DNA of 64,000 nt, taken from the NCBI RefSeq assembly GCF_022045235.1, contig NW_027266264.1, forward strand, positions 46,562,001 through 46,626,000, given 5' to 3'. The notes beneath the pieces were generated by a model. That model was given only the letters and a program-made list of their open reading frames with translations, did not search any database and had not been told where the DNA came from. Position 1 is the stretch's first letter; the number at the start of each line of letters is the position of its first letter. Both the position numbers and the translations under genes were made by a program. Positions 32,525 to 62,010 of the stretch are shown here, one piece after another. The DNA comes from Haliotis cracherodii. Its lineage: Eukaryota.

Positions 32525-34445
32525 AGTTTGTCAAGTCTTCCGCCTGAAATATATTGCCACACTTTGTCAAATCTAATGGTAGAAGTTCAGATAGATAAGT
32601 ATTCCATCTATTAATACACGATAAACGTTCCCATATAATGCGAATTTGTGGTTTTAATTAAGACATTACGTTTATTTGATGAACGTAAAGTTGTAGCAGG
32701 CTGTCAGTCTCCAGGGCTATATCTGTCATCTTCATGGTTGAACTACTGCTATCTAATCATAAGTAGTACAATACAAACACGTGATTTACAGGAAGTATCT
32801 AGCAGTAGGGTGATTCCACCTATAGAGCTCTCTTTAGGTTATAATTACAAGTGCCAAGTATTAATGGGGACATGTATATAAACTTAGATAGTTTAAAAAC
32901 AGATTACATTTAAGTTCCTCTTCTTAATTATGGTAACATAATCTACATCTAAATATGTAGATTTACTTTTATTCCAATATTACCGAAAATAACAAGGATC
33001 TTTCATCGTTTCACTACAGCACGGCGTGAAGGGGATAGGAATAATCATTGCATATTATTTTATTTTATCATCCTTATTTTATCCTTGTATTGTACATGAC
33101 TATATTCCAAATTATATTTGACATACCTCAAAAACGAGGGTTGAAAAGAACGTCTTAGACAATTATTAATTTATTACACAATACATTTCTCTCCTCTAGA
33201 ATTGAAGCAAATTATTTCCTGAAATAATGTTCCTGATGCTGATTTCATAATAGAATTCATGTGGAATAGAGCTGGCTAGACTTGCGTTTATATATATCTT
33301 GATTGGTTTTGTTTTCAGAAATTACAAATATTCCACAGTCATGGTGCGTGACTAACTAAATAAGGTTTAGTTGTGTTATCTATTGTGGCTGTGATGTATG
33401 CGTCTTTGCATTGTGCATCCCAGGTTTGTATCCTCATTTCCCTTTTATCCCCTACGTTGCAAGATTTGTCCACCAGGAGATGCGTCAAATCCGTAAAGAC
33501 AGTAATCTTAATCAACTTAATATATCAGAAACAAATTTATATCCAATTACACTCATTGTTAATGTTGTGGCCAATTCATTTATTGTATATATTAGTATGA
33601 TCTTATATTCTATTTTTCACATATATTTCTCTTAATTCATTATAAAATATGTTATGTTCTATATTCTGTATTATTCTCGTGTGTACCTATGGAACCTTTC
33701 TCTATGTCGCTGTATTGACTTTTGATAAGAAACTTCTGTTCTGTTCTTTGAAACGTTTATTGAATTGAATAGCAGGTGTGCACATGTATGTTTCTGAATG
33801 AGCATTTCTTGGTAGCAAATGATAATATGTGTAAAAATCTTGGACGCGACGTTAAACCCAATTTCACCTCACCTCACCTCATATGTGTAACTCCACATTA
33901 ATATACATTCTGCTACGAGGCTGGTCTGTATAGAAAACATCCGCGTATGGCCCGCAGTGAGTACAGATGAAACTAGCTTTCATGACAATTGACTCACGGT
34001 GATACTTGAACAAGGTACAAATGGTATATCACGAAATAAATATTGTATGTCGATATGTTAGATATCGGTATAACGCAATTCCCTTCTCATTTCACTATTA
34101 AATGAAAACGTCAGAGACAAATTGTTGGCTTCCAGCATGGATTTTAGAACACGACATATATTGCAATATAACAATTTTTATTGAAACTATTCATCAACGT
34201 AAAATGATGGAACAAAGAGACAGATAGAATATTACATACATATTGTCTTTGTCTTGCGTAATATTGCCAACTCAGTGTAGGTATTGTAATCTACACAAAC
34301 ACCACCCCACATATTTCCTGTAGTATATAGCACTTTCCACACATAGTTTAACACAGTTTGTGTTGATCATATCCCACATAACGATATGTGTATTAGTTTT
34401 TGAGACACAATGCAGCAACCAGAAGCTCCGTGACAAGCCAGAAAG

Positions 34446-35573
34446 TCAGGGAGATCCTGACGCCATTCTCAGATGCGGATAGGCGGAGTATTGTCCACAG
34501 GAGAAGTGTTGTTGTAGAGCCTGGTAGGTTGCGTGAGGGTGACCGTTTCCTGCAGTGGGTGTAGGGGTTGGTGGCATATAAGCCCCACCCAGAGGCGAGC
34601 TTCCTGGAGGAGAACTGGAGAGAGGGGAGCCGGTCAGTGAGCTGTTCATGCTGCTGGCGTTGTAGTAGCCAGTTGTAGGAGAGTAGCCTGTAGGAGATCC
34701 CATTGTCCAGGTACTAGGATCAGGTTTGCTTCCTATACTGTATTGCTGGGGCTGGGTGAGTCCCTGGGGAAGGGAGCCAAGACTCAGGGGATTAAGAGCA
34801 GGGTAGGGGGACGGGCCCCCGTAGAGACTGAAATGGCCATAAGAACTCACATGCTGAATAGTGGCGTCTTCTCGGCGTTGTCTGTGCGCCAGTTTGAAAC
34901 GTTTAGCACGACGAAGGAAACTGCCGTTACCGAACATGTCCCCACAAGATGGATGCAGAGCCCAATGGTTACCCTTGCCTGGTTTCCCCGGGGGTCGGGG
35001 CACCTTGACGAAACAGTCATTGAGGGAGAGGTTGTGTCTGATGGAGTTCTGCCATCTCTGTTGGTTCTCTTTGTAATATGGAAACCTCTTCATGATGAAA
35101 CTGTATATATCGTTGAGAGTCATCATACCAGTAGGAGAACTCTCGATGGCCATGGTAATCAATGCAATGTAGGAATAGGGAGGCTTGACATTTTCAGCAA
35201 AGCGTCGATTTTGTTGAGACAGAGTTGATGTACCTGAATATTCATCTGAATCCTCGTCTTCGTCGTTGTCGGAACACACTGACGGCGATGGTGATGACTG
35301 GTTGCTCTGATCGTTGTCAGGATGCCCATGTTGCAGCAGATTGTCGCGAGTGTCGTCTGTTCCAGGAGATACTTCTGATTTGACGTCTGTTATCCCTGTC
35401 GTCAGACCTGGCATCGGGGGAAGAGACAGTGAAGGCGTGTGTGGGGACAGGATGTACGCTCCTGACATGGGAGGCCCCTGCTGCACGGCATGCGACAACG
35501 ACATCATACAGGAGGACTTGTCGTCTGCGCCACCTCCATACTGGAACAGATTTGGGCCTTGATTCAGCAACAT
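34446..35573 (-). CDS. FoxAB: Forkhead box transcription factor, FoxAB-like, copy 1 (375 aa, intronless; most canonical copy)
   Basis: Full forkhead domain [28 protein letters not shown]...[51 protein letters not shown]. Mixed FoxA/FoxB-type residues and the [15 protein letters not shown] tail fit the FoxAB subfamily. The subfamily call is from recognition, not a tree. Confidence 0.85.
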
Positions 35574-35660
35574 TCTCGTATGTTTTACAGATCAAATCTA
35601 ACCGATGTGAAGGATTTCACTTTCAAAACCCTGAGTGTTTGTCCCATCTACTCGCGACAC

Positions 35661-35826
35661 GGTTTATATCCCACATGGAATTAATCCACAAAATACACAA
35701 CTTCTGTACCCCCCTGTTCATAGATTAAGCCGCTATTGTTCGATAATCTGCTCCCAGCTACATCCAACCAATCGCAATCCAGTTACACCTTGTCCAGTCA
35801 TAATCTTGTTCCTCTGTTCTGATTGG
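35661..35826 (-). promoter_or_regulatory. Core promoter of Fox copy 1: TATA, TAATC sites, CCAAT
   Basis: TATAAA on the - strand at 35663-35668 (~90 bp before the ATG), TAATCC at 35682, TAATCT (-) near 35722, CCAAT (-) at 35822-35826. The same layout occurs in the other copies. Confidence 0.65.
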
Positions 35827-38800
35827 AGAGCTACTATATTGATTCCACACCCCTTCACTGGTGCTATACTGGGACTCAATATTATTGCATGAAGAAAACA
35901 TATCCAACAAATAGTAGCTTAATATTATTGTTAACGACTCAATACATCAGAAACAAATGTTTTGTTAAGATCATTGCTATTTTCCAAACATCTCTTTGAA
36001 GCAGCTCTTGTCGACATTGATTAAAAATTGATGAAAGATGATAACATATGTAAAATTAGTCACGTCGAAATTTGTCAGAATTTGTGCCTCAGCATTTCTA
36101 TTTTGTCGAAAGTCTGTCGAACGTGTCCAACCCGCACTTGATTTGTTGCATGACTCTGATATCATGGCTTTCGTTGATATTGACAGAAATACGATTATAC
36201 GTGTATCAAAATGTCTAGACCCGAGCTATCTAATAAGATGTCATTCGATCTGAACATGTGAGCCGAGAATAATTAATTGCTTAAATGGTCCCTTGAGTTC
36301 CCACTTGATGAATATATTGTTATGTTTTTATGTCAGAGAAAATGCACAATAAGGTAATGGAGTCTTGATGCAATGGCAGTGTTCACGGCCTCTGTATGCA
36401 TCTTTCCAATGGACTCTTCAACTGCTAGACATTAAAAAATCCCCAAATCCTTTCTTCGGGGAATATTTTGTTTTAATTGATTAAACACCCCGTTGTCCAG
36501 ACTTTACCTTGTAGATTAGAATTAGATTAGACCTTTATAATCTTCCTCACCGTAAAACCGTATTGTATCATCACGCTCAGACAATGCCTTGATCAGCCGT
36601 GACATCAGTTTTATCAGTAGTGAGCCATCATAGACTCCAAATTACACACGCCATATAATAGAGCTTCCCACTTCTTGAGCCTGCAACATGTATATTTCAC
36701 GGTCACATCCCCACCCCCGGGGTCGTAACGTCCGTGGCTAACCCCCGCCCTAGGCGATATGCGAAACAGGACCATTCATGATTTCTTGTCAATTTCAGTA
36801 AACTTGTATATGTTGAAAGTGAATATCATTGTCAATATTTACCGGCTGGATACTGACGTGTGTATATCTATTGCCTATGGTGAAATATATTTCGACAGTA
36901 AAATTGTCATTGAGGCACATATTTACATTGCTTCAAATAGCTTACGTTAGATTCAATTAAACACGTCAAGCTCACAGTTAAATGAATGTTACTCGTGATT
37001 TTCTTTAACCGTATTCTTAAGATGAAGAACCTTATTTTATTAAAGTGTCACACATTGTAAAGTGCAAGTATGACATTAAATAATCTTTACATGTATACAA
37101 TGTCCGGCCATATGGCCTAAGAGACACACAACTCAACATGTATACAAATATGCGTAAAGTAACAAGATGCATGTATAGATTTAAATACAGATTTCATAGT
37201 GAGGCTCTTCATCGACCTCTATATGTTCTTGGACCAAACAGGAACTAGTTTCCTGTTGAAAACATCACGAAGCTAATGAACTCGTTAACCGATCAATTTA
37301 TTAGATGAACATGTATTCGCTTCAAGGAACACAACATACATATCCGTGTGGTACCGTGGTCATTATTTCCTAATTAACTAGAATATATTGCGGTAACTTC
37401 AGAGAAAAATTAATTTCTATCTTCTATGCATAAACATGCCTAATCTAATGTGCACAGGGGATTTGTACCTTGTTGAGGGAGACGCGTTCTTTCGGAACGT
37501 AAGTATTTACGTCTATGTTTATGTTCAGCCTATGTCGGACGTGCTGTACAAATTGGCTTAAAACAAACTAACCCGATCCCCTTTCATTAAATGCGGATGA
37601 CGTGTTCGATATAATCGCCGTGGCGTCAGCAGCGCGCTTTCTCCGTGTTACAGGTGTAAAACTCCAGTTTCTGTTTTCTATAACTTCAAAGGAGACTCAG
37701 TTTCTTGCTTTTAACACAAAATATGTTTTAAGAAAAAAGGCTTGCGGTATTTGTTTTAATTGTTTTCCCTAGATGACTCAAGAAGATACACACATTGACA
37801 ATATTAGACTTTTCGGAAAATTCAAACGTTTGCTATTTTGAAGTGGTGTCAAAAGTGCGTTTTCCAAAATAAGTCTCTGATGTAAAAGAAGTGTTTTCAA
37901 TGCTTAACACCTTTATTTCAAGTAAACATGTCAAATTCACGCCATTGTCAATTTCCCCCATGTTGCTGTATACAGTACTTGAGCGATATTCACACTATTT
38001 GGCCATACACTTTGTGCTATACGTGACAGGATGTTGCAGGCAGGTAATGGCCACACGTTGGTGTTATTGTTATAACAATATATTACCACTTCTTGCTATA
38101 CCAACGAACCGAAATGGACATCATATTGGTTGAATCAAGTGTGAGAGGGTATATGCATAGAAGCAATATAATTGTTGAGGAGTATTTATCAGCATTGATA
38201 ACCAGTTACACATATACTGATAGTTAAGTGGTTTTTGTAGTAGTAGTTTTCACATGAAGGAATTGTATTGATACAAACCATATATACGCGCGTGTACAAT
38301 GCGGATTTATCATTGATAAGTATCATATAATTGTGTTCCGTTGATACCTGTTTTTTTGTTAGATGAATAGTGTAAGCATACATGATTAGTATTTAATTTT
38401 AAATTGTAAAGAAGACACACTACATTTAATGTATCGTAAAATTATCCAGTAACTATACATATCTTGAAATGCCAATTTGCAGTGGAACTAGCATGGCATT
38501 TCTTTTCAAGAATTTTTGGGGACAATTTACCCACCCCCAGAATATCAAATGGTCGGCCATTAATGTCAGTAATAATTTGGCCGAATTATCATGCCTACTG
38601 TGATTGATAATAACAATATGATAGTGTCCAATCGAAACACGTTATTATAATTAATTATGATTCTAGTATCATAGCTACACCAAACATGCTCCACTTCTTC
38701 AAAGGAAAACACGTAACGTATCGATCTTAACCCTGATGCTGGACGGGGAAGGCTTCATAAGCTAGTCCAGGTTTGTGTGTGCTACCAGATACAAGAGTGG

Positions 38801-39404
38801 ATCGAAATACTTGTTATGGGACCCCTCAAACTCACTGCGTTTCTATTGTGTTCGTGATTCTACTCATCTTGACTGTGTCCATCACTGGGGGAGCGAGAAA
38901 ACAGTTTTTGAAAATCTCACTTTCTGTGCAACAATATAAAATTTCGAGTAAAGAAAACATTACAGAAGCCACACTGTGGGTTATGAGGTTACCATAAATG
39001 CATAATACCTAGATAATGTACCTAAATATACAATATAAGATGTTTAATAACTTCTACCATACTCATACAGGTGAGAACAATTACATATTGTGTATGCAGA
39101 TAATAAAATCATGGTTCTCCCTGTTACCACTGCATGAACCTTAAATGCTAAACTATTTCCATGTCCTGGTTTTGCATTGAAAAGACATATTTGTCCACTG
39201 AACGCCTATCATAAACGTGCAGTCAAGTAAACTGTAATAGCAGAAAATGTCAGTCCAAATAGAGAGAAAAATCAAATATAGATTGAGTTTCATCCTCAAT
39301 AGGTCACAAACTTGTACTGGAGTGTGTCCATAATATATCATTACCCTTGAGTGAACTACATCCGTCATTGGGAATAGCCTTAAAACATACCTGTATCCTT
39401 CATA

Positions 39405-40645
39405 AGGAATCCCCTTAGAGTAGAGTTAAAATAAGTATCACCGTGAAGTGAGCAATGGTTCGTTTGCAAGGAATATGATACGATGCAGTACTAGTTTTAC
39501 TTACAATCAGCTATTTTGAGTTTAATTCCACTATGAACTGACATGTTGTGTATGAACCTTTATGTAGTGTATGAACTTATGTATAGTGTATGAACTTAGT
39601 TGCAGTCTATGAACGTATGTATAGTGTATGAACTTATATGTAGTGTATGAACTTATATGTAGTGTATGAACAAATGTGTGATGTATGAACTTATGTATAA
39701 TGTATGAACTTATATTTAGTGTATGAACTTATGTGTAGGGTATGAACTTATATATAGTGTATGAACTTATGTGTAGTGTATGAACTTATGTGTAGGGTAT
39801 GAACAAATGTATGGTGTGTGAACTTATATATAGTGTATGAACTTATATGTAGTGTATGAACAAATGCGTGGTGTTTTGAACTTATGTATAGTGTATGAAC
39901 TTATGTGTAGTGTGTGAAATTATATGTAGTGTATGAGGAATCACCTTGGAGTAGAGTTAAAATAAGTATCACCATGGAGTGAGCAATTGTGTGTTTGCAA
40001 GAGTGAATGATTGAGGTGGGTGTAACGCCGCTTTTAACATTATTCCGGTTATATCACGGCGTATCAGCTTAATATGGGAGGAAAGCCCGAAGTGATGCAG
40101 GTCTCAGACGTTTACCACTTCGGTGAAACCCACGAGCACGGGTATGGTGCTGACAAACCTAGAAACATAATCGGGGCGAACAGGGATTCGAACTCACAAG
40201 CATAGGTTTCTGGCGTGCCCAAGGGACACAACTCTGCACAGCGAATCGCGGCGCCTTAGACGACTGGGCCACCCGTGCCCCGTGTTTGCAAGAAATCTGA
40301 TACGATATGGTAGTTTAACTTACAATCAGCCATTTTGAGTTTTAACTCCATTATGAACTGACATGTGGTGTGTGAACTTATGTGCAGTGTATAAACTTAT
40401 GTGTAGTGTATAAACTTATGTGTAGTGTATAAACATATGTGTAGTGTATAAACATATGTGTAGTGTATAAACATATGTGTAGTGTATAAATATATGTGTA
40501 GTGTATAAACATATGTGTAGTGTATAAACATATGTGTAGTGTATAAACATATGTGTAGTGTATAAACTTATGTGTAGTGTGGTTTATGAACCTATGTGAA
40601 GTGCACGAACTGATTGTGGTGTATGAACTTATGTGTAGTGTATGT
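39405..40645. repeat. Two-unit tandem duplication, each unit a ~140-bp unique block plus a 19-bp minisatellite (agtgtatgaacttatgtgt)
   Basis: The block 'gagtagagttaaaataagtatcacc...acttacaatcagc.attttgag' occurs at ~39418 and ~39948. Minisatellites lie at 39548-39935 and 40368-40645. Confidence 0.88.
40003..40281 (-). mobile_element. SINE family B, full length, with 12-bp TSD
   Basis: Reverse complement of the 20433 family. gtgtttgcaaga is duplicated at 39991-40002 and 40282-40293. Confidence 0.9.
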
Positions 40646-40874
40646 CATTGATTCCCCGAGGGAGAGGAGTGTATAAACTAATCTTCTGGTGAGTGTACGA
40701 AAAAGAAGAGACAGCTTTTGTATACGTAGTTTATTTTAAGTATTAAGACAATACATGTATGCACAAGCTCAATTCTTTTAAGAACATTGCCGTATAATAT
40801 CTTTGGCAATATCTCGGTCATTCACATGCTTCAAATAGACATACTTAGCACTTATACGTCAAACAAGCTAAACG

Positions 40875-41981
40875 CTAAGCTTGATTTTCATAAGAAAGTG
40901 AACAAAGCGTATTTGTTTCATTCGGAAATATTGAGTTCGTAGCACTAACAAGGGAATGATGCAATGATGAATACAGACTGTGAGAATTTTGACTTCGACA
41001 TGTAGAGGGCATATGTGGCACGTTGACCCCACCCAGGGTAGAGCTTCCCGGGGGAGAGCTGGAGAGAGGGGAGCCGGTCAGGGAGCTGTTCATGCTGCTG
41101 GCGTTGTAGTAGCCGGCTGTAGGAGGAGAGTAGACTGTAGGAGATGTCATAGTCCAGGGACTGGGGTCAGGCCTATTTGCTGTGCTGTAGGCGTGTGTCT
41201 GGGTCAGTCCCTGGGTTATGGGGGGAAGACTTACGGGGCTGAAGCCAAGGTAGGGGGACTGACCTCCATATAAACCTAAAAGGCCATAAGAAGTAAGACG
41301 TTGGACGGTGGCTTCATCTTGTCGCTGTTTGTGTCCTGACTTGAAACGTTTAGAACGACGGAGGAAACTGCCGTTACCAAACATGTCCCCACAAGATGGA
41401 TGCAGAGCCCACAGGTTACCCTTGCCTGGTTTCCCCGGGGGTCGGGGCACCTTGACGAAACAGTCATTGAGGGAGAGGTTGTGTCTGATGGAGTTTTGCC
41501 ATCTCCGTTGGTTGTCTTGGTAGTATGGGAATCTCTTGACGATGTAGTTGTAGATGTCGTTGAGAGTCATCATGCCTGTTGTAGAACTCTCGACGGCCAT
41601 GGTGATGAGAGCCACATAGGAATAGGGAGGCTTCTTGTTGGAAAACTCTCTTTTCTGTTGGGAGAATGTAGACGTTCCTGGCCCACTGTTACGACTCGTG
41701 TCATCGTCGTCAGTATCTGAAGTAAGTGATGCGGGTGGTGACGGGGTAATGCTGTAATGACTCGTAGTCTCTACTGTGTGACGAGGAATGGATCTCGCTT
41801 CAGATGTAAAATGGCGTTGGTCATCGGGTACGAACTTGGATGTGTCGTCTGCTTCCTGGGCAACTGCAGACGTCCAATGAGTGACTGGAGCGTGGTGTTG
41901 AAGAAATTGGAGAGATGTCGTCTGTTGCGACATGCAGGAAGAAGCATCCTCGCTGTGTTTAAACGTGGATGGGTTAAACAT
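40875..41981 (-). CDS. FoxAB: FoxAB-like forkhead transcription factor, copy 2 (368 aa from ATG 41981)
   Basis: Intact forkhead domain. The ATG at 41981 (MFNPS) aligns with MYNPF of copies 3/4 and lies 81 bp downstream of the TATA box. AATAAA (-) at 40730-40735. Confidence 0.83.
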
Positions 41982-42059
41982 GTTTCTTGACACAAGCTCC
42001 GGGGAGAACAGTTTTATCTCAGTAGGAAGAGAAATGTTTATCCTCTCCCTCAACCACAA

Positions 42060-42199
42060 GGTTTATATTCCCTGTCGAGATTATCCCCTCGTCAAACGCT
42101 TTACAGAACTCATTTGTTTCTTGATTAGGCGTCCATTGTTTCTCCAACTGTAATGAGACTAGGAGGTGCTTGCTGTTCAGGCTACACAGAGCTGATTGG
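42060..42199 (-). promoter_or_regulatory. Core promoter of Fox copy 2
   Basis: TATAAA (-) at 42062-42067, TAATCA (-) near 42122, CCAAT (-) at 42195-42199. Confidence 0.6.
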
Positions 42200-47887: not shown

Positions 47888-47980
47888 GTTATTCGAACCC
47901 TCGATCATAGGTTTTTGGCGTGTCCAAGAGGCACAATTCAGCACAGCGGCGCCCTATACAACTGGGCCAACCGTGCCTCC
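47888..47980 (-). mobile_element. SINE family B 5' fragment
   Basis: attcgaaccc...ggcgtgtccaag.ggcacaa...actgggccaaccgtgcc matches the head at 40185-40281. Confidence 0.7.
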
Positions 47981-48369
47981 GCAGAGGTAGATATGTTTTT
48001 TAAACATGGCATATATTTGAAAAGTTTGTGGCAAAAATCTTTTTGAGCTCGATTCAGCTGTTTTATCGTTTTATCTTGCTATTGCTATAGTTGTCCTTAA
48101 TATTGTCGGGGAGTCAGGATAGGATGAACTCCCGCATGCCACCTAAAGGGGGACAGCGTGCCACCGTTAGCTGCCCTTTTCATTCTAGGTAAACACGTTG
48201 ACTCGAGGCAAGTGGTCAGTGGTTTTCAATGCTACAGGGAAGTTGCGATTTCAGTTATTTCGTAAAATGCCAAGACATTTCGTGCCCATATCTATGTTCA
48301 TAGTGATATATTTGTCCCCACTGGCAATGACGCACAGAATTAAGCGACCTGTATATGACCTCGCGGATC

Positions 48370-48640
48370 TAGTGTTCATATCCTGGTATATGTCTTTTGC
48401 AGAATCGGACATTGGCTGTTGTATGGGTGAGTGCAGCTAGTCACAGGAGAGAGGGCAGCCGTATCGTGTAGGCACCACCCAGGGGAGAGCTATCGAAGGA
48501 GACTTGGAGAGGGGGGAGCCGGTCTGATCCCATGTTCAGATCCCATAGTGCAGGTTCTGGGGTCAGACTTGCCCTATGTGCTGTGGGGATGTGTCTAGGT
48601 CAGTCCCAGGGGTAAGGGGTCAAGATTCAGGGGGTTGAAA
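48370..48640 (-). pseudogene. Relic FoxAB-like copy: C-terminal coding portion only, forkhead box absent
   Basis: Collinear with copy 3 at ~53075-53391: 'gaatcggacattggctgttgtatg', 'ggagaggggggagccggtc', 'gatcccat', 'tgtgctgtggggatgtgtctaggtcagtcccaggggtaagg..tcagggggttgaa'. Similarity stops before the forkhead box. Confidence 0.8.
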
Positions 48641-51600
48641 ATTAAAGGTGAATCATCTTGCGGCCTGGGTATACAATGTATAATTTTCCCAGATAAACTC
48701 TCTTCATTGAGATCTGTTGTTTTTTTAAATTCAGTATGAAAATAACAAATAACATTTATAATGATACTGTCGCTTCACTTTTAACGTATTGCTTTAAACA
48801 TTTGCATTAACATTCTAAACTGATTATTCACGTCGAATCTGCATAACGACTGTACGTACATATACATGTAAAGATATTACTGATATACGGGGTCACAATC
48901 AACCTTGTGTGACAGCCAACGTTTCTCGGCGTCGACAGGCGAGCACGATTTAGGACACGCCGCACACAATTAGTTTGCAACTAATTACATACTAATGGTT
49001 TGACGTTTCACCTCAATTTTCCACAGGGTACCTGGATTATGTGCATCACGCCCAGATAAAAATCCTCGCCCAGGGGCATCAGGTGACGAATCCAGTTTCT
49101 CCCCAAGGCCTATGTCCCGTGTCCTGTCGGAGTAAATACCAGGGTCAATATTGATTCTGACCCATATGTCTGCTCCATGACATGGTACCTGTTTCCTTGG
49201 AAAGTTTCCAGCCTGTAGTAACTGGAGTAGGTAGAATAATATCAGATTGAAGACATTATCTATCCAATGAAGCCTTCAATATGTCCAAATAAGTGTTTTT
49301 CAGATGTGTTTCAAACTCGACAACGTGTTTGAGCAATTGTATGTAACTGGATACCAGCGCTATATATATATCCATATATGTATGTATGTAACAAAAGAAT
49401 ACTATCCTATACATTAATTATGGTTTACGACTTCGCAACCGTCTTTGTACAAATGATGTAAAATTATTCTTTAGGTTATTTGCCTTCATTAATCAAATTC
49501 TTTTATCTCTTCTTGTTGTGTTGTGTTGCGACTTATTTTTCACAAAATTGTACACGTGCACATCTCTGTGCATATAAGTCTGCATGTTTATACTTCTACA
49601 TGTACAAAATTGTATATATATAATGTTACTGTATGTATATGGGCCTATGGCCAGAATACAATAAATGATGATGATGATGATGTAATGTGTATAACTAAGA
49701 TAACAAACTCCACACATGAAATATATTTATATGTTACAGTAAAAGTGTAAAATGACTGAAATTTTCACTTGTGCAATTTACTAAACGCCAAACAGCTCAG
49801 TCAATTTACAATACATCCTTCCATTCATTATATTATGATAATGAAATTCCAAACATTTGTATGCTCTCTGTCACATAAATCGTGTTATGTAGGTATGAAG
49901 TAAAACGTGTCATACTAATGTGATGGTCATAAGTTGGGCAACCATACAGACTGAAGACACGTAAAACATGCCATGTAAATGTCCCAAAAAACATTTTACA
50001 CAAAAAAATAAATCCTAGCTATTTACTTCATGACCCAGTCTATGACGATATAGCGGTTGTTTCGTCACTTTAACTCCCAATGATGACGTCAATTTACAAA
50101 TTATATAGACCTTGAATTTGATTCAATTATTTGGATATGCCATTGTCAAACTTTAGATTTGAAATGAGTTTAGTCTATTGCCATATAGCCTAAGTTAATG
50201 CTTATTGTCCATTTAAAGTTGTTTTATTTGTCAAATGGCTATGTGTATATGTAACATGGAAGGATCAATTTGAGACTGGAGAATATGTCCCCACTGAAAC
50301 TCGTAAAGCATTTGAACCAGGACAAGCTGACACAAGTAATCGTAACGGGGAGACTTAATGGTGCGTTAAATGAGTTGTCTCTGCACTCAGATGTCATAAT
50401 AAATCAACAAATCTAACAGCTGTAAAAACATCCAATCTGTGCCAGCAGCTAATCCAATGTGGATCGTAAATCATCGTTCTGGGATATATAAGATAGAAAA
50501 TGTTAAAGGATATTACTAGTATTTACAAAACAGAACAAAACTGATTGATAGATGTGATCTTCAAAAATTCATCTATGGCTGATTGTCATTACAGGTATAC
50601 TCTTCCCTTTAAAAAGAAGAAGATTTGTTTGGACACTTGCTGAATTAACATGACTATACTATAACACACGCATTCGTGTAAATACTTTACTTATTTCCAT
50701 CTGAACGCCTTAAGCATGTTGTCATTAGAGTGACAAAACAAGTGGTTACAATGTTAACATGCTGTTTTGATGTCAGTAGCAGGATGAAACTGTCTGTTTC
50801 TCCACCTCAACGTTTTACCTGACGATGTCGGCATATTTGATGTTTCTATAAGGTAACAAGATTCAATCAACCCTGGATTAGGGCTTGTGGGGTTAAGCAA
50901 TTGTGGCTTGATCAAATACAGATTACCATTTGTCGGTTTCCTGTTTGCTTAGCTTCCTAATTTACCGGTAAGGAACAACCAGCTTTATTAAGCAAGCAAT
51001 GACGAACATTATCCGATCTTGTGAATTGGCCTACCAGAAACCGCTTATCTCCCTTTACCATTCTCCCGTCAGTGGATGAATGTAAGTAAGATGGCGACAT
51101 AGTGGACTTTACTGCACGCGACAGACATTCAAATCCAATTTCACAGAAGGCCGACTTAATACCTTTTAATATGCATATTATATATATACACATATATATA
51201 TTTGTATAAGGGGTATGTAACAAAACGAAAACAACCACATAGTTCTACATGTCTACCTTCATGTCATCTTGTCATGTGCTTTATTTCATACATAAATGAT
51301 GTAGTTCTAATGAAAATAAAGGGTAATTGATTGGAACATCTTAACGTTGTTTTGTGTGTTGTTTTACATCATTCACAACGCACGTGTGTGAATCTCATCT
51401 TGTCAAAGCCTTGGTTCATACCAGATTGATTTGATGAGCATGTGGATGCTTTTGAAGATATATTTTCACGATCATTAGGTCTAGAGCCAATTTACACTGA
51501 ATACTACATGGAATCAAGGTTATCATTTTACATTTATGATCACTATTCCAATATCCCCCACGACCTTCCCCAGGCGCCTGATAATTCTGATATTAATGTT

Positions 51601-53022
51601 CATAAGCGTTTTCTCTCAAACTTATTATTTTATACACAAATTGTTTATTCTGCACAGTCACACATTGCATCGTAATCAAGGCAAATCTGGGATTCGAACC
51701 CACATCACACTATGTCACTCCATTGACACAGGCCCACATCCACGAGCTGAGACATTGATTATGTTTGTTGCTTCTGCTGGTGTAAACCAATGTGCATGTT
51801 TATGTATAATCGGTTACATGCCTTTGGGTAAAAGTTTAAGAATAATAGCAATAATGTTCTTACTGGAAGAATGGCTAATGTTCACAGGTGTCCACAATGC
51901 TAGAAATTCCGCCTGTGTCCGGCTTCTGATGGGTTGGATTTAAGATGGGTACGAGGTGACAAACGTGTTTTCAACTTATGTTACTTAATTACATTAATCC
52001 AACTTAAACACATGCAAAAATACACGATGAGTCTAAACTATGATCAATTCATAAAAGGGGTTAATTACCGATAGTTCTTTTTCTGTCCTGGCATGTTCAC
52101 AAGCATGTATAAGTGGATCGGTTTAATATTTAGGAAATAAGCATTTTGTGTTTCAGCGTAGAGTTGGTTAACTGTAGATATAACCATGCAAAATTGAATT
52201 CTGAATAAAAGGAGATCACATTGAAACAAGACATGACATTGTTTCCTTTGAATTCTTATTTGTATTCACCAAAAGCTTGCAGGTGTCACTATAGGATGTA
52301 TGTAATAGATATAGTACTGACACAACTTCTCTGTCTATCTCAGCGCGCAAGCAGATACTCGAGTTCTACAAACTATACCGTGACTGCAGATCGTACAAAC
52401 TCCACCATCACATTCGGAGCAGATTGCACGATTACATATAAACTGTCCGGATCATGCAGTTACGTTTGTTGTTGAAGGCCTGAATTTTGAATGTACACGT
52501 TTCACGAAGCTGGAGAGTTTCACGCCTTTATAAACTGTTTACTTTGGAATACTTTATCAGTGTAAAATGTACTCCATCATCACAAAACAGTGACTATCCA
52601 TTGGACAAAAGTATTTGCCTGTGCTCTAAGGGATACTTGTAGCTGAATCGGCTTGTACACCGCAAGGCAGCAGGTCTCGGGGTGCACACGACAGAGGTGT
52701 ATAAAATACAAATGTACAAATAAGTCTTGTTAATTTCATTTATTTTATTTCTATATTTAGTTCATGTTGTACATTATGTAACCATAAGTATTTTACCTGA
52801 ACGCAACATATTGTTACTGTAAGGCAATATATACCGTATGTTTTCAGTTAAATACACACAATACATATTTGACAATACAGATATGATATTGTCAGTAGTA
52901 TTGCCATCATATTCAAAGCCACGAATTGTCTGTCATGCACCAGATGTTGAATCAACTTATATTCCTATATAGCACTTGTGTATATCAGTCTTCATTATCG
53001 CACCAGCAGGGGTGTATCTACA

Positions 53023-54099
53023 CTAAGCATGGTATGATCTCGTGGACCTTGTGCCCCAACTCTGACTGATGTCGTTTGAAGAATCAGTCATTGACTGTTG
53101 TATGTTTGGATACAGGTAGTTGCAGGAAGGGTCAGGTATGCTTAAACTGGGTGAGGGAACTTGTGGCGCGTATGTTCCGGCCAGTGGAGAGCTTCCCGGG
53201 GGAGAGCTGGAGAGAGGGGAACCGGTCAGAGAACTGTTGATACTTCTGGTGTTGTAGTAGCCGGCTGTAGGAGGAGAGTAGCCTGTAGGAGATCCCATGG
53301 TCCAGATACAGGGGTCCGGTTTGCCTATTGTGCTGTAGGGGTGTGTCTGGGTCAGTCCCGGGGGTAAGGAGCCGTGACTCAGGGGGTTGAAGCTTGTGTA
53401 AGGAGATGGACCCCCATACAATCCCAATAACTGTCCGTAAGGACTGGCAGGATGGAATGAAGGATCTTCTCGACGTTGCTTTTGTGCGGACTTGAAACGC
53501 TTAGAACGACGAAGGAAACTGCCGTTACCAAACATGTCCCCACAAGATGGATGCAGAGCCCACAGGTTACCCTTGCCTGGTTTCCCCGGGGGTCGGGGCA
53601 CCTTGACGAAACAGTCATTGAGGGAGAGGTTGTGTCTGATGGAGTTTTGCCATCTCCGTTGGTTGTCTTGGTAGTATGGGAATCTCTTGACGATGTAGTT
53701 GTAGATGTCGTTGAGAGTCATCATGCCTGTTGTAGAACTCTCGACGGCCATGGTGATGAGAGCCACATAGGAATAGGGAGGCTTCTTGTTGGAAAATCGT
53801 CTGTCTTGTTGTGAGAGGGTGGATGTTCCCGAGAAACCGTCCCCTTCTCCGTTCGAGGATACCGATGAGGTAGGAGACGGAAGAATGTTGTCATAATTTG
53901 GAGATCCTTGTTGCGTGTGACCTGATCCATGTGTGATCAGGGATCTGACGTCTTCTCCCTCAGTAGCTCCAGATGTCTGAGACACGACTGGGACGGAGTG
54001 TTGTGAAGATATGGAGTGATCAGATGGAAGAGGTGTCATCTGCTGTCCCATGAAGGGAGATGTACCTGGGACATACTGGAACATGAATGGGTTATACAT
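53023..54099 (-). CDS. FoxAB: FoxAB-like forkhead transcription factor, copy 3 (358 aa)
   Basis: Intact intronless ORF and forkhead domain. TATAAA (-) at 54183-54188, CCAAT (-) at 54334-54338, AATAAA (-) at 52739-52749. Confidence 0.85.
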
Positions 54100-55129
54100 G
54101 ATTCCTGGCTCAATGTGCAGCAGGTGAGAAATGTATTACCTCAGTAGGCAGAGGAATGTTTATCCCCCTCGTCACGGCGAGGTTTATAGTCCCTGACCAG
54201 ATAATCCCCTCAACACGCGCTTTACAGATCTCAATTGCCTCTAGATTAGGTAGCCTTTGATATGTAAATAACCGTATGTCGTCACTGATAATGGGCGTCG
54301 CTCTAAAACATCTTTCAAAAGTTTTTAGGTACGATTGGTCAAGAGCTATAATCTCGCCGTTCACTTGTGAGTTGCATTACAGTATATGAAATATGTGCTA
54401 TTATTCGCACGAAAGACGTTACATCCACCAGTGTGTTCATAACGATGACGGAAAGTAATAAAAAAACACTAGATTACAATAAGTGTGTTAATGGTTAAAT
54501 AGTTGTAGCATGGATTCCTTTCGAAAGGCTTATAGACTTTGAAGATGTCGAAAGAAAAGGCACCTCACATTTAGTATTTATAGAAGTTGGTATACAATAT
54601 GAACGATCTTGTGACTTCTACTCGACTGTAGAAGTGTCACCATGTTCAGTATATGTATATTGTGGACGAGGAACCGGTTGGTTCAAGTCTAAGTAAAGTT
54701 TATGTTCTGTTCAGTACATAGCTGACACCAACAATCGTATTGGGTAGACATATTGCTGTTTTCTCAAGGATTGTCACCGAGCTTATTGATATCCCAACAA
54801 ACCAAAACCACACTATCAAGGGCTGTCAGTATCGGTCATCACAAATACAACAACAACCTGTCGGTGTTAAAAGCTCAAATGTAGGTGGTTGTATTGGCAT
54901 TGCTACTGTGTGCAATACTCGAAGATGGGGACGTGCCAAAAATTGCACCATAAGATGATTTTGTTTATGTTGACATTGATTATTAAAAATATATTTGTCT
55001 AAGATACTATAAAACCACCACAATAATATACTATATACGTTTCATTATGGGTGCAGATAGAATATGGCTGATTTCGGCGTTAAACAACAATGTAAACAAT
55101 CAACTGTGTATAGTTCAGGCTGCAGACAG

Positions 55130-56050
55130 AGTATCTCACAGCATAAATATATTAGTGTAAAAGGGGTATATAAAATATACTACCGGTCACTAGCCATATA
55201 AAATATGTTTTCTTAGTTGGAGAATTAAAATGTAGGTTTGGGCTGTGTAATATACATAATATTTATAAAGTAAAATAAGTTTATCAGTATTAATAACTCT
55301 AGTAAGTTGGAATAGCTAAAACTGACCTTTGCGTATAAACCTTCACGCAAATCATCGTACACAGGGAAATCCAACAATACATGACATTCATCCCCAACAC
55401 TTTCCTGACACTGAAAACACACTCTTTCATTCACATTCATATTCGAATATCTGCCTGTTTCCAACTTCAGATCTAAGAAGGCAGAGTGGTTTAGAACGAG
55501 GCATATGCATACTAACATAACTTTCACACCCATACACATCTTTAAACATTCTATACGTACGTAAGTTATTACCACCCGTTCTTCCGAGAGGCTTGCGTAA
55601 CAGTTCATTCCAATCAGTCACATAAAATCCCAGGCAGATAACCTGCACACCTGCAAGTACACTTTTCACGCTCACATTCTCTAAAATATTCAACCCCCAT
55701 TCGTTCAGCTTTGCCAGTATATCAAACGTACACAAGCATACCGTTCAGACCACATAAAACATTCTTATTTAATCTAAGGAGGTTCTAGTAAAACGATAAT
55801 ACTGTAACAATACACATCCACTATCTAACTGTCGGAGGAATCCATCCCATATCTCCATTAACAGCAACATTTGGAGCGTATTTACCCAATCCTAAAATAA
55901 ATCTCAAAGCACGATGGTGAACGGCATTTACAGTAGAAATGTCACGATGACCCCAGATAGATGCCCAAAGATTCAAGACTGACCAAACCATCGTATCGTA
56001 CAATTTGGAATAAGCAGTGGATTGCATACGTCCGATTGCCTTAGCATTGT
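55130..56050 (-). mobile_element. LINE 3'-end fragment (L2/CR1-like)
   Basis: 'YSKLYDTMV..VL..ASIWG...ALRFILG...PNVAV.GDMGW', 'NLRTYRMFK', 'LKLETGRY...ERVCFQC...DECHVLLD.P.Y'. Related to 31790-32524. Confidence 0.8.
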
Positions 56051-56589
56051 AGTCAAAATGTGTGAGTGAGGTTGGTTTAACACGGCTTTGACACTACACA
56101 TGCTGTCCATTTACATGGTGCTGTACTAAGTAAACAAATGCTAATAATTACAATCTCAAAATGAGCCATTAAATGACCAAAGTCACCATAGGCTGTCTGA
56201 AAGATGTACACCACACCCTGTAGGATAACCCCTCACCCAAGGGCGTCAGGTGACATATCCGCGGACACCAGTGTCTTCCCCGGGTCTATGTCCTGTAGCT
56301 ATAGAAGTAAGCACTAGGGTCAATATTGATTCAGACCCGTACATGCTTACGAAATATGCAGATATTTCAGTTTATTCACGAAATGCACATATCTACACAT
56401 ATCGACACATATGCACAATGTATAATTAACATATTCGAGGTTATAAAACCCAAATTAAACTATACGATTATAGTGTCAAAAGTAAAATTATATAAATTAT
56501 AAATTCTCTTATCGATCGGGTACAATATTTTGCTTGATGCTTTGACAGATACAGATATCAATAACATGCTGTGATTAATGGCACTGAAA

Positions 56590-56915
56590 GAACAAGCCAT
56601 GCGTTGCAAGGAGTTCCAGTATTCCAAAAGATCAAAGAAGCAGGACTAAACATGCAAATGTAAATGTGCGACAAAATAAGTCACCCACTTAGGGCATATT
56701 TTCAGCAAAGATGGCATCCATGCCAATATACTTCAAAAATAGATTCAGTCACAGAGATCCCACCCTCTAAAAATGTCCATGACGTGTGTCACTTCTTAGA
56801 TTTGGTCTCGTATGATCACAAATTTGTAACACAAATTCTGGTATCGCCTCCCCCTCTATACAATCTTCTGAAAAAAGACGCATCTCTCAAATTGTGGCAA
56901 ATTAGGGCAACTTGA
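56590..56915 (+). mobile_element. Ty3/gypsy pol (RT thumb/connection) fragment
   Basis: 'LGHIFSKDGI', 'KIDSVTEIPPSKNVHDVCHFLDLVSYDHKFV...PLYNLLKKD'. Confidence 0.75.
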
Positions 56916-59900
56916 TTCTCATGGCGTAACTTGGAGTGATGTTGTTAAACCGCGTCTTTTGACCATACAAGAATCTTCCTGTTCTGATTTTTAGGAACAA
57001 ACAATGTTGACTGGTAACGTTTCGTTTTCGTCAGTTTTCAAGGAAGGGTATATGGTGCTTTATGATCATTTCCCATCACAGTCAACAACTGTTATGGCCT
57101 GATGAAATGGAAGGTTTGAAATGATTATTAATAAATAAAGGTTACAGGCCTACTGTCTCTCTGTCAAAAACACTGTATTGATCAGGATGTCCATATTGTG
57201 ATCCAGATGGAGGCTGAGTTTTTTTTATTGAAATAAAATTAAGAACCCCCCCCTCCCCCAGAAATGACACAATCAAATGACACAAGTAATCGTAATGGGG
57301 AGACTTAATGGTGCGTTAAATAAGTTGTCTCTACACTCACAGACATCACAACAAATCAACACCATGCTCTGTCACATTGTCAGCACATGTAACAGCAGTA
57401 ACAACATCCAATCTGTGTCAGTAGCAGTGGATGTGCGGAATATTATTCTGGGATAGTAAAGGTATACAATCTTAGAGGATAGTAGTTTTAATGCTGAACA
57501 AAAATGACTGACTAAGCTGGCAAAATAGAAATGAATTCCCTGACTGAATGCCATCATATTTTTCTTTAAACAAGAATACGTGTTCTTTTCTTTAATTAAG
57601 AAGACATGTACATGGTTATGCTACATATGAATACACTTGATATGTTACTAAATACTGAAAGTTTATTAGAACAGAGAAAGCTAGCACAATTTGTAAAATA
57701 AAAAGTAGTATGTAGTATATACTGTATGTATAAAATGTAGTGTTACACACGCCTTTGTGTCACTACTTTACATCTGTCCATAAGTATGTTGTCATTAGAG
57801 TGTGGTTACAATGCTAGAGTGGTCAGAAGCAGGGTGGGGCGAATTTGATGACTACATGAGTGACCGAGTCACTCAACCCTGGATTGGAGCTTGTGATGCG
57901 AAGCTAGGCCGCTACCAATTTTGGTTTGATCAAATAGAGATTATCATTTGTCGGTTTCCTGTTTGCTTAGCTTCCTAATTTACCTGAAAGGAACAACCCG
58001 TTTTGTTTAGCTACCAAAGACTAAACTTATCCGATCTTCAGAATTGACTTACCTCCGGATCAGAGGATGAAGGTAAGTTAGATGGCGACAGAGGCGGACG
58101 ATACTGCGCGCGACAGACATTCAAATTCAATTTCACAGAAGGCCGACTTAATAACGATATATATTTATACCCATCCACCCAAGGGTTGCCCAAAAGATTA
58201 CCTTGTCCAAACTTAGCATTGGTTCACCGAATATTCTAATCAATTACCCTTTATTTTCATTAGAAGTACATCATTGATGTATGAAATATGTAGAACTGTG
58301 TGGTTGTTGTTTTTTGTTTTAAGATAACAACACATAAATAAATCGTACTTATTATCAAATAGAAGAAAATGCCTTTCTCACATCACTTTTCTTTAAAAAA
58401 TAATGGCATATTCTTACATTCTTAAAGTGTTTTTTTTTTATTTCTTCACGTAACACGTGCTAAGTATACATACTATTACACACGTCAGTACTTTACTTAT
58501 TTCCATGTACACGCCTTAAGCATGTTGTCATTAGAGTGATAAAAGAAGTGGTTGCAATGTTAACATGCTGTTTTGATGTCAGTAGCAGGGTGAGACTGTC
58601 TGTTTCTCCACCCCAAGATTTTACCTGACGATGTCGGCATATTTGATGTTTCTATAAGGTAACAAGATTCAATCAACCCTGGATTAGGGCTTGTGGGGTT
58701 AAGCAATTGTGGTTTGATCAAATACAGATTACCATTTGTCGGCTTCGTATTTGCTTAGTCTCCTAATTTACAAGTAATGAACAACCAGCTTTATTCAGCA
58801 AGCAAATGACGGACATTATCCGATCTTGTGAATTGGCTTACCAGAAACCGCTTATCTCCCTTTACCATTCTCCCGTCAGTGGATGAAGGTAAGTAAGATG
58901 GCGACAGAGTGGACTTTACTGCACGCGACAGAGGGATTCAAATCCAATTTCACAGAAGGCCGACTTAATACCTTTTAATATGCATATTATATATATACAT
59001 ACAGATATAAACTGATATAAAGAAGATGATGTACTAACGTGGACTTTATTATTTTATTATATATTACATGTACACCGAGTGAACATTTACCTCATTTTTG
59101 TATATATATATATATATTTACATGTAACAAAACGAAAACAACCACATAGTTCTACATGTTGCCTTCATGTCATCTTGTCATGTGCTTTATTTCATACATA
59201 AATGATGTAGTTCTAATGAAAATATAGGGTAAATGATTGGAACATCTTAACGTTGTTTTGTGTGTTGTTTTACATCATTCACAACGCACGTGTGTGAATC
59301 TCATCTTGTCAAAGCCTTGGTTCATACCAGATTGATTTGATGAGCATGTGGATGCTTATGAAGATATATTTTCACGATCATTAGGTCTAGAGCCAATTTA
59401 CACTTAATACTACATGGAATCAAGGTTATCATTTTACATTTATGATCACTATTCCAATATCCCCCACGACCTTCCCCAGGCGCCTGATAATTCTGATATT
59501 AATGTTCATAAGCGTACTCACCTTCTCTCAAACTTATTATTTTATACACAAATTGTTTATTCTGCACAGTCACACATTGCATCGTAATCAAGGCAAATCT
59601 GGGATTCGAACCCACATCACACTATGTCACTCCATTGACACAGGCCCACATCCACGAGCTGAGACATTGATTATGTTTGTTGCTTCTGCTGGTGTAAACC
59701 AATGTGCATGTTTATGTATAATCGGTTACATGCCTTTGGGTAAAAGTTTAAGAATAATAGCAATAATGTTCTTACTGGAAGAATGGCTAATGTTCACAGG
59801 TGTCCACAATGCTAGAAATTCCGCCTGTGTCCGGCTTCTGATGGGTTGGATTTAAGATGGGTACGAGGTGACAAACGTGTTTTCAACTTATGTTACTTAA

Positions 59901-60933
59901 TTACATTAATCCAACTTAAACACATGCAAAAATACACGATGAGTCTAAACTATGATCAATTCATAAAAGGGGTTAATTACCGATAGTTCTTTTTCTGTCC
60001 TGGCATGTTCACAAGCATGTATAAGTGGATCGGTTAATATTTAGGAAATAAGCATTTTGTGTTTTAGCGTAGAGTTGGTTAACTGTAGATATAACCATGC
60101 AAAATTGAATTCTGAATAAAAGGAGATCACATTGAAACAAGACATGACATTGTTTCCTTTGAATTCTTATTTGTATTCACCAAAAGCTTGCAGGTGTCAC
60201 TATAGGATGTATGTAATAGATATAGTACTGACACAACTTCTCTGTCTATCTCAGCGCGCAAGCAGATACTCGAGTTCTACAAACTATACCGTGACTGCAG
60301 ATCGTACAAACTCCACCATCACATTCGGAGCAGATTGCACGATTACATATAAACTGTCCGGATCATGCAGTTACGTTTGTTGTTGAAGGCCTGAATTTTG
60401 AATGTACACGTTTCACGAAGCTGGAGAGTTTCACGCCTTTATAAACTGTTTACTTTGGAATACTTTATCAGTGTAAAATGTACTCCATCATCACAAAACA
60501 GTGACTATCCATTGGACAAAAGTATTTGCCTGTGCTCTAAGGGATACTTGTAGCTGAATCGGCTTGTACACCGCAAGGCAGCAGGTCTCGGGGTGCACAC
60601 GACAGAGGTGTATAAAATACAAATGTACAAATAAGTCTTGTTAATTTCATTTATTTTATTTCTATATTTAGTTCATGTTGTACATTATGTAACCATAAGT
60701 ATTTTACCTGAACGCAACATATTGTTACTGTAAGGCAATATATACCGTATGTTTTCAGTTAAATACACACAATACATATTTGACAATACAGATATGATAT
60801 TGTCAGTAGTATTGCCATCATATTCAAAGCCACGAATTGTCTGTCATGCACCAGATGTTGAATCAACTTATATTCCTATATAGCACTTGTGTATATCAGT
60901 CTTCATTATCGCACCAGCAGGGGTGTATCTACA

Positions 60934-62010
60934 CTAAGCATGGTATGATCTCGTGGACCTTGTGCCCCAACTCTGACTGATGTCGTTTGAAGAATCAGTC
61001 ATTGACTGTTGTATGTTTGGATACAGGTAGTTGCAGGAAGGGTCAGGTATGCTTAAACTGGGTGAGGGAACTTGTGGCGCGTATGTTCCGGCCAGTGGAG
61101 AGCTTCCCGGGGGAGAGCTGGAGAGAGGGGAACCGGTCAGAGAACTGTTGATACTTCTGGTGTTGTAGTAGCCGGCTGTAGGAGGAGAGTAGCCTGTAGG
61201 AGATCCCATGGTCCAGATACAGGGGTCCGGTTTGCCTATTGTGCTGTAGGGGTGTGTCTGGGTCAGTCCCGGGGGTAAGGAGCCGTGACTCAGGGGGTTG
61301 AAGCTTGTGTAAGGAGATGGACCCCCATACAATCCCAATAACTGTCCGTAAGGACTGGCAGGATGGAATGAAGGATCTTCTCGACGTTGCTTTTGTGCGG
61401 ACTTGAAACGTTTAGAACGACGAAGGAAACTGCCGTTGCCGAACATGTCCCCACAAGATGGATGCAGAGCCCACAGGTTACCCTTGCCTGGTTTCCCCGG
61501 GGGTCGGGGCACCTTGACGAAACAGTCATTGAGGGAGAGGTTGTGTCTGATGGAGTTTTGCCATCTCCGTTGGTTGTCTTCGTAGTATGGGAATCTCTTG
61601 ACGATGTAGTTGTAGATGTCGTTGAGAGTCATCATGCCTGTTGTAGAACTCTCGACGGCCATGGTGATGAGAGCCACATAGGAATAGGGAGGCTTCTTGT
61701 TGGAAAATCGTCTGTCTTGTTGTGAGAGGGTGGATGTTCCCGAGAAACCGTCCCCTTCTCCGTTCGAGGATACCGATGAGGTAGGAGACGGAAGAATGTT
61801 GTCATAATTTGGAGATCCTTGTTGCGTGTGACCTGATCCATGTGTGATCAGGGATCTGACGTCTTCTCCCTCAGTAGCTCCAGATGTCTGAGACACGACT
61901 GGGACGGAGTGTTGTGAAGATATGGAGTGATCAGATGGAAGAGGTGTCATCTGCTGTCCCATGAAGGGAGATGTACCTGGGACATACTGGAACATGAATG
62001 GGTTATACAT
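60934..62010 (-). CDS. FoxAB: FoxAB-like forkhead transcription factor, copy 4 (358 aa; differs from copy 3 by Q>E)
   Basis: Intact ORF, YYEDNQ vs YYQDNQ in copy 3. TATAAA (-) at 62094-62099. Confidence 0.83.

Follow-up and report, generated by a model that had tools for sequence, protein, structure and literature searches.

A tandem array of FoxAB-class forkhead genes in the black abalone Haliotis cracherodii

FoxAB is an ancient class of forkhead genes that was lost in vertebrates and panarthropods; it is present as a single gene in Saccoglossus and Capitella and as two genes (foxAB-1 and foxAB-2) in Owenia (PMC9539403, PMC4077281). The genes described here lie in a stretch of 64,000 nucleotides (nt) of Haliotis cracherodii DNA (RefSeq assembly GCF_022045235.1, contig NW_027266264.1, positions 46,562,001 to 46,626,000; called the window below) and in the DNA that follows it; the copies inside the window were assigned to FoxAB as a tandem cluster in an earlier, sequence-only reading. 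FoxAB is among the least understood ancient Fox classes and was found in one or two copies wherever it was studied. Expression in early embryonic or larval ectoderm and in the foregut is taken as a mark of the class.

The array is like FoxAB of Saccoglossus, Capitella and Owenia in the grouping of the forkhead domain, in the motifs flanking this domain in its first copy (AB1) and in its intronless coding sequence, which is usual in most clade I Fox genes. It differs in copy number, since Haliotis carries ten genes in one array, nine of them without several ancestral motifs outside the domain. Lineage-specific multiplication of one clade I class was likewise described for foxQ2 in annelids and molluscs within Spiralia (Seudre et al. 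2022, PMC9539403), where the paralogues are fast-evolving and expressed in early development. However, foxQ2 is another class, and a single co-oriented array with homogenisation limited to the domain is a Haliotis feature that was not found described there (PMC9539403). The FoxL1-FoxC-FoxF-FoxQ1 cluster also consists of linked Fox genes, but it is ancient, combines different classes and is kept across phyla, whereas the Haliotis array is young to middle-aged and confined to one class and one genus. In the black abalone genome, three forkhead genes were located within 0.4 Mb on another contig (C2:54.62-55.01 Mb), including one that was placed with vertebrate FoxC2; this trio is probably the conserved FoxC/FoxL1/FoxF cluster.

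Multigene families under birth-and-death evolution and gene conversion are generally known for co-oriented tandem copies, relics, mosaic genes, repeat-bounded young duplicates and a homogenised tract. The same features were found here, and mechanistically no difference was seen. A familiar process is seen here in a new instance, and what makes the array of interest is its gene class and its host lineage. Literature searches on FoxAB and abalone, with subscription journals outside their coverage, returned no published description of the array, and the expansion is apparently undescribed. As a ten-gene array kept by selection throughout a genus, it offers a natural experiment on the diversification of a developmental transcription factor under an unchanged DNA-binding surface, and it would be a clear case of domain-limited gene conversion. 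It is also of use to abalone biology and aquaculture, as it singles out a family of genes that probably regulate early development and bear inconsistent names in RefSeq.

Extent, layout and control elements of the array

Coordinates are those of the window; past its end the numbering was continued for 100 kb (extended coordinates), and C1 denotes the contig carrying the window. Ten intact forkhead open reading frames (ORFs) of 357-375 amino acids (aa) were found in the window and these additional 100 kb, all on the minus strand and arranged head-to-tail over about 101 kb (46.596-46.698 Mb). They were labelled AB1 to AB10 in order along the extended coordinates. A Pfam scan of the 1.18-Gb genome (80 contigs) yielded 43 forkhead matches. 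Ten of these were the array copies (129-135 bits; C1 minus strand, 46.597-46.697 Mb), and among the matches also resembling array proteins in this whole-genome scan no FoxAB copy was detected outside the array.

AB1: 34446-35573, minus strand; single ORF of 375 aa, forkhead domain at aa 130-227 (34893-35186)
AB2: 40875-41981, minus strand; 368 aa from the first ATG, forkhead domain 41340-41633
Relic A: 48354-48643, minus strand; 290-bp pseudogene fragment of the post-domain C-terminal region only, with in-frame stops and frameshifts
AB3: 53023-54099, minus strand; derived copy of 358 aa, forkhead domain 53491-53784
AB4: 60934-62010, minus strand; 358 aa, one amino-acid difference from AB3, forkhead domain 61402-61695
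AB5: 68772-69848 (extended), minus strand; intact ORF beyond the window
AB6: 104429-105502 (extended), minus strand; intact ORF beyond the window
AB7: 110461-111552 (extended), minus strand; intact ORF beyond the window
Relic B: about 116177-116622 (extended); second relic, beyond the window
AB8: 122016-123122 (extended), minus strand; intact ORF beyond the window
AB9: 129541-130656 (extended), minus strand; intact ORF beyond the window
AB10: 134432-135547 (extended), minus strand; intact ORF beyond the window

Four co-oriented forkhead ORFs spaced by 6.4, 12.1 and 7.9 kb had been reported from the sequence alone. Each of them contained one Forkhead domain (PF00250, E 1e-37 to 1e-38), and start-to-start spacings of 6408, 12118 and 7911 bp were measured for AB1-AB4. 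The ORF of AB2 had been listed as 40875-42059 because of a TTG opening; its first ATG is at 41981. The suspicion that the array might continue past the window was borne out by the ten copies. The decayed copy placed between copies 2 and 3 exists as relic A, yet it is smaller than had been implied, as it lacks the forkhead box; none was detected upstream of it by relaxed blastn.

Fox-like sequence was absent from window positions 1-34000 and from the 28 kb past AB10, and no further Fox relics were found in the array gap and flanks at E 1e-3. The ORFs of the 35-kb gap between AB5 and AB6 and of the flanks were transposon remnants (Tc1/mariner, reverse transcriptase), a minisatellite, a sub-threshold ApoL-like ORF and a polysaccharide-deacetylase-like ORF. 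The black abalone array is very probably made up of ten intact FoxAB-class genes and two broken relics, all in one orientation, with its proximal part in the window.

The sequence-only reading had assigned each of its four copies a TATA box, a CCAAT box and a polyadenylation signal of its own, and these elements were recovered in all of them. TATA(A/T)A was located 70-95 bp 5' of the ATG in every copy, in an aligned position across all ten. CCAAT was present in each copy between about -125 and -250, with an extra CCAAT at -63 in AB10, and AATAAA or ATTAAA occurred 140-280 nt past each stop codon. The elements of the four copies in the window are:

AB1 TATAAA: 35663-35668, minus strand; 95 bp upstream of the ATG, with GGATTA 19 bp further 5' (35682-35687) and ACAAACA 20 bp downstream
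AB1 polyadenylation signal AATAAA: 34177-34182, minus strand; 264 nt past the stop
AB2 TATAAA: 42062-42067, minus strand; at -86, with GGATAA 19 bp upstream and ATAAACA about 20 bp downstream
AB2 polyadenylation signal AATAAA: 40730-40735, minus strand; 140 nt past the stop
AB3 TATAAA: 54183-54188, minus strand; at -89, polyadenylation signal 52744-52749
AB4 TATAAA: 62094-62099, minus strand; at -89, polyadenylation signal 60655-60660

In nine copies out of ten, GGATTA or GGATAA, a site of the K50-homeodomain (Otx/Pitx/Gsc) type, was observed 15-23 bp 5' of the TATA box (in the window at 35682-35687, 42081-42086, 54202-54207 and 62113-62118). A forkhead-type RYAAAYA sequence lies about 20 bp 3' of the TATA box in AB1-AB5 and could permit auto- or cross-regulation.

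RefSeq already models the array genes under mixed names (E3-like, lin-31-like, D2-like, B1/B2-like, unc-130-like, FD4-like and A4-B-like). Each gene is a single coding exon, in keeping with its description as intronless; for eight of the ten copies the NCBI model is the full single-exon ORF, and the models of AB2 and AB10 begin at an internal Met. One caveat applies: the AB2 models of H. cracherodii and H. rufescens splice from a donor within the ORF near 41033 to the following exon, on which no RNA-like cover was seen in the runs mapped:

Alternative 3' coding exon of AB2 (VMDTVKMSRITNTIETQ): 38835-38885, minus strand

Class membership and history in Haliotis

A maximum-likelihood (ML) tree of forkhead domains was built from 113 rows, comprising the array, 12 other Fox genes of the genome, species-named matches of AB1, and FoxA, FoxB, FoxC2, FoxD3 and FoxE3 references, without author-named FoxAB from cnidarian, amphioxus and sea urchin. 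The array was grouped with the Saccoglossus 'fork-head box A/B' and with mollusc, annelid, brachiopod, nemertean, echinoderm and hemichordate sequences (support 99/94), apart from FoxB (99/91) and FoxA (100/98), in agreement with the class proposed from the sequence alone. The four window ORFs carry PF00250 only, without Forkhead_N or HNF_C. The FoxA gene of the genome (C45:35.9 Mb) matches human FOXA1 residues 17-439 and has relatives with Forkhead_N and HNF_C. The closest non-array forkhead gene is the FoxB of the genome at C1:8.89 Mb, a full-length match to vertebrate FoxB1 and Saccoglossus FoxB.

Motifs outside the domain were compared as well. AB1 has SSCMM, a 15-residue motif, a 14-residue motif and a C-terminal QYSxxPxLR in common with FoxAB of Saccoglossus (in part), Lingula, Owenia, Argopecten, Patella and Gigantopelta. 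AB3, the sole derived copy in the motif alignment, retains only GTSTLSQQ and the block that follows the domain. Domain grouping and motifs support a placement of the array genes in FoxAB, as judged from sequence comparison.

All 28 Haliotis sequences formed one clade in the domain tree (99/89), within which AB2-AB10 and their relatives formed a derived clade (100/99) on a long branch. In a full-length tree with the single-copy outgroups Gigantopelta and Patella, AB8 was placed with H. rubra and H. asinina copies (support 100), AB3-5 with H. rufescens, H. rubra and H. asinina copies (support 100), and AB2 with H. rubra P0012 (100/99). Because several AB types group across species, most of the expansion predates the split of the four Haliotis species compared. 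At least ten array-type proteins are encoded by H. rufescens, and AB1 orthologues were present in all four species; among the matches listed, other molluscs had one or two FoxAB genes.

Between AB1 and its orthologues, identity is 98.9% for H. rufescens (XP_046350688.1) and 89.6% for H. asinina. For the derived copies the corresponding values are 96-97% and 62-82%, and AB2-AB10 change about three times faster than AB1. AB1 is shown by these data to be the slow-evolving copy with the ancestral FoxAB motifs, and AB2-AB10 to be derived by repeated tandem duplication, as the sequence-only reading had held in setting a conservative first copy beside derived ones. Its proposal of a lineage-specific birth-and-death expansion stood with regard to the Haliotis clade, the single-copy outgroups, the two relics and the very young duplicates. 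It has to be widened in one respect: on the sequences compared, the expansion is not peculiar to H. cracherodii and is mostly older than the split of H. cracherodii, H. rufescens, H. rubra and H. asinina.

The youngest part of the array is a series of tandem units around AB3-AB5:

First 7.9-kb tandem unit, carrying AB3: 51215-59009; 99.3% identical over 7.8 kb to the second unit
Second 7.9-kb tandem unit, carrying AB4: 59122-66925 (extended; its end lies outside the window)
Junction module of about 520-680 bp: 50683-51200, recurring at 58489-59009, 66241-66917 and 73103-73775 (the last two beyond the window); 94-95% identity, bounding each 7.9-kb unit

A third, partial unit carries AB5 at 98.2% identity; the region upstream of AB5 departs from that of AB3 and AB4 from -150 onwards. 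Unequal crossing-over is likely to have acted on the junction module. Proteins of the AB3 type resemble each other more within H. cracherodii and within H. rufescens than across the two species, a pattern that points to turnover or concerted evolution.

Selection, probable gene conversion and competing explanations

Nonsynonymous and synonymous divergence (dN and dS) between array copies was calculated according to Nei-Gojobori. The dN/dS ratio was 0.29-0.60 for whole genes and 0.16-0.58 for the post-domain region, and the domain had a dN of 0-0.018. In AB2-AB10, dS was 0.03-0.17 in the domain, compared with 0.25 to saturation (>1.5) in the flanking coding sequence. The part of the domain that encodes helix 3 and wing 1 contains a tract that is identical in all ten copies:

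82-nt tract in AB1: 34967-35048, minus strand
82-nt tract in AB2: 41414-41495, minus strand
82-nt tract in AB3: 53565-53646, minus strand
82-nt tract in AB4: 61476-61557, minus strand

AB2 and AB3 have as many as 278 identical nt in common. The proportion of synonymous differences (pS) was 0.003-0.025 in the tract of helix 3 and wing 1 and 0.15-0.61 alongside; for AB1 compared with the other copies it was 0.025 in the tract, 0.61 in helices 1-2 and 0.22 in wing 2. Codon bias was considered as the cause of the tract identity and was ruled out, because the FoxB and FoxA genes of the same genome use the same codon as the array at only 13/28 and 7/28 of the shared tract residues. Gene conversion offers the simplest reading of the near-identical forkhead boxes.

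The copies are mosaic as well. AB6 and AB7, with an N-terminal dS of 0.02 and a post-domain dS of 0.44, have only their N-terminal halves in common, and three post-domain sequence types are spread over the copies irrespective of N-terminal type. The ages within the array range from the 99.3%-identical units down to pairs with saturated flanking dS. These data support the view that the constancy of the DNA-binding domain is owed to gene conversion as well as to selection.

Expression was checked for AB1 and AB2 with assembled contigs of sequencing runs, of which two from two organisms (X1 and X3) are RNA-like; their RNA nature is a guess. The AB1 coding sequence was covered at 35100-35550 in X1 and at 35100-35579 in X3, both at 98% identity. 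Unique intergenic DNA was not covered by X1 or X3 and was covered continuously, at 97.5%, by the DNA run X12 of a relative. One X1 contig corresponded to 40721-41051, that is, to the unique C-terminal tail of AB2 and 154 nt of 3' untranslated region, and stopped just beyond the predicted AATAAA. The evidence for transcription of this derived copy is positive but thin.

It was considered whether AB1 might be the sole working FoxAB gene and AB2-AB10 young, functionless duplicates heading for decay. The two relics show that copies die, the derived copies evolve about three times as fast and have unalignable N- and C-terminal ends, the NCBI models of AB2 and AB10 are truncated, and the RNA-like depth was 10 for AB2 and 179 for AB1, although contig depths are poor measures. 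Decay is nevertheless quite unlikely, as none of the nine derived ORFs is broken and their lengths are similar, several derived types persist as far as H. asinina, dN is close to 0 in the domain, the post-domain dN/dS is low, the promoter elements are conserved and the unique 3' end of AB2 is present in an RNA-like run. An assembly artefact, for example haplotypes placed in tandem, might account for the near-identical AB3, AB4 and AB5 units, since the 99.3% identity of the first two over 7.8 kb could equal allelic divergence. This was judged unlikely in view of the graded divergence (99.3% and 98.2%), the different AB5 upstream region, the 94-95% identity of the bounding module itself, as expected of real unequal crossing-over, and the three AB3-type proteins encoded by the independent H. 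rufescens assembly. Even if the young units were disregarded, eight distinct genes would be left. An assignment of the array to divergent FoxB or another clade I class could appeal to the mixed automatic NCBI names and to wing 2, which resembles that of FoxB. It is highly unlikely and largely refuted, given that the group supported at 99/94 holds the author-named Saccoglossus FoxAB, that the genome has its clear FoxB orthologue on C1, that one FoxB and one FoxAB-type match coexist in many species, and that the extra-domain motifs of AB1 are common to FoxAB of other phyla.

Several points weigh against the preferred account, in which ten FoxAB genes are kept by selection and homogenised in their domain by conversion. 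When Haliotis was constrained with FoxB in an approximately unbiased (AU) test, the cost was 36 log-likelihood units and p-AU was 0.044, a marginal value obtained from 106 columns. The expression support is thin in that RNA nature was guessed, only contigs were used and two genes were looked at; runs with the same species label (X13) gave no cover of AB1 or AB2, which is uninformative as to silence because stage and tissue are unspecified. For the N-terminal regions dN/dS has no meaning, as they cannot be aligned and their divergence is saturated, and values for them were set aside. Identity at synonymous sites could partly be nucleotide-level constraint instead of conversion. AB3 and AB4, at 99.3% identity, could in principle be an assembly duplication, a worry countered by the larger difference of AB5 and the three such proteins of H. 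rufescens.

Protein anatomy, proposed function and surrounding sequence

All copies keep a Ser/acidic stretch, GTSTLSQQ, the forkhead domain, GLTQT and a block of about 45 aa. Between copy types, no alignment was possible over the first ~100 and the last ~45 residues. The sequence-only reading, in which the N- and C-terminal regions were described as rewritten, was correct for these ends; it did not apply to a post-domain block of roughly 60 aa, which every copy retains. The structure predicted for AB1 by AlphaFold, computed from a shallow alignment, was confident only at residues 130-225 (helices and a two-stranded wing), and the predicted local distance difference test (pLDDT) score was <50 outside 117-225.

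According to the mechanism proposed for the array, units would be duplicated by unequal crossing-over, and gene conversion and purifying selection would jointly homogenise the DNA-binding domain. As the ten copies have one and the same recognition helix, a common RYAAAYA-type core site is expected. The ten proteins would bind the same sites of this type and would differ in their disordered N- and C-terminal effector regions and in their promoters, and the copies would act as same-site factors with different partners, timing or dose. They would most likely do so in the early embryo and the larva, the stages at which FoxAB is active in annelids and hemichordates.

A more specific and rather speculative suggestion is that the array is a battery of early zygotic genes, fired jointly or in sequence from cleavage to trochophore, with AB3-5 serving dose and the diverged copies serving as stage- or lineage-specific effectors on binding sites common to all. 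It is put forward because the genes are short, intronless, TATA-driven, multi-copy and fast-evolving, with GGATTA at a fixed distance from the TATA box and, in AB1-AB5, the forkhead-type site near the start. In that event, the 82-nt tract could double as a nucleotide-level element, for example a small-RNA target common to the copies or a regulatory site within the exon.

Around the genes, repeats and transposon remnants were recorded. Pfam scans of the longer ORFs at window 4.6-21.5 kb gave nothing relevant, and the PTCD2 neighbour named in the sequence-only reading was left unconfirmed by them. The features are, in order of position:

1918-4335: tandem satellite of 2.4 kb with strong GC skew; repeat period about 37 bp, copies about 91% identical
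23358-25210, minus strand: Tc1/mariner-type transposase remnant (HTH_Tnp_Tc3_2 and DDE_3)
29836-31110: minisatellite, open in several frames on both strands
31793-32530: reverse-transcriptase fragment, next after this minisatellite
39460-39940 and 40350-40645 (approximate): tandem repeats of 19-bp period, flanking the following repeat
40048-40281: very high-copy short repeat between AB1 and AB2, about 450 bp beyond the AB2 polyadenylation signal
85925-90710 (extended): coding-looking minisatellite of about 5 kb in the AB5-AB6 gap, with repeats such as HHTWRQ and GDSITH
99062-99967 (extended), minus strand: 302-aa ORF in the AB5-AB6 gap, with sub-threshold ApoL and DUF4079 matches (E about 1e-3)
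119481-120458 (extended): second Tc1/mariner-type remnant, 326 aa, between relic B and AB8
160300-162768 (extended), minus strand: open frame of 823 aa, about 25 kb past AB10, that encodes a polysaccharide deacetylase (chitin-deacetylase-like) domain

The open frames at 29836-31110 were rejected as a gene; they are Cys/Leu/Pro/Ser- and Gly/Arg/Lys/Thr-rich pseudo-ORFs of the minisatellite. Summed contig depths on the repeat at 40048-40281 reached hundreds of thousands in all four runs mapped, with many internal joints. The 823-aa polysaccharide deacetylase frame is the first recognisable gene found distal to the array that is neither a Fox gene nor a transposon.

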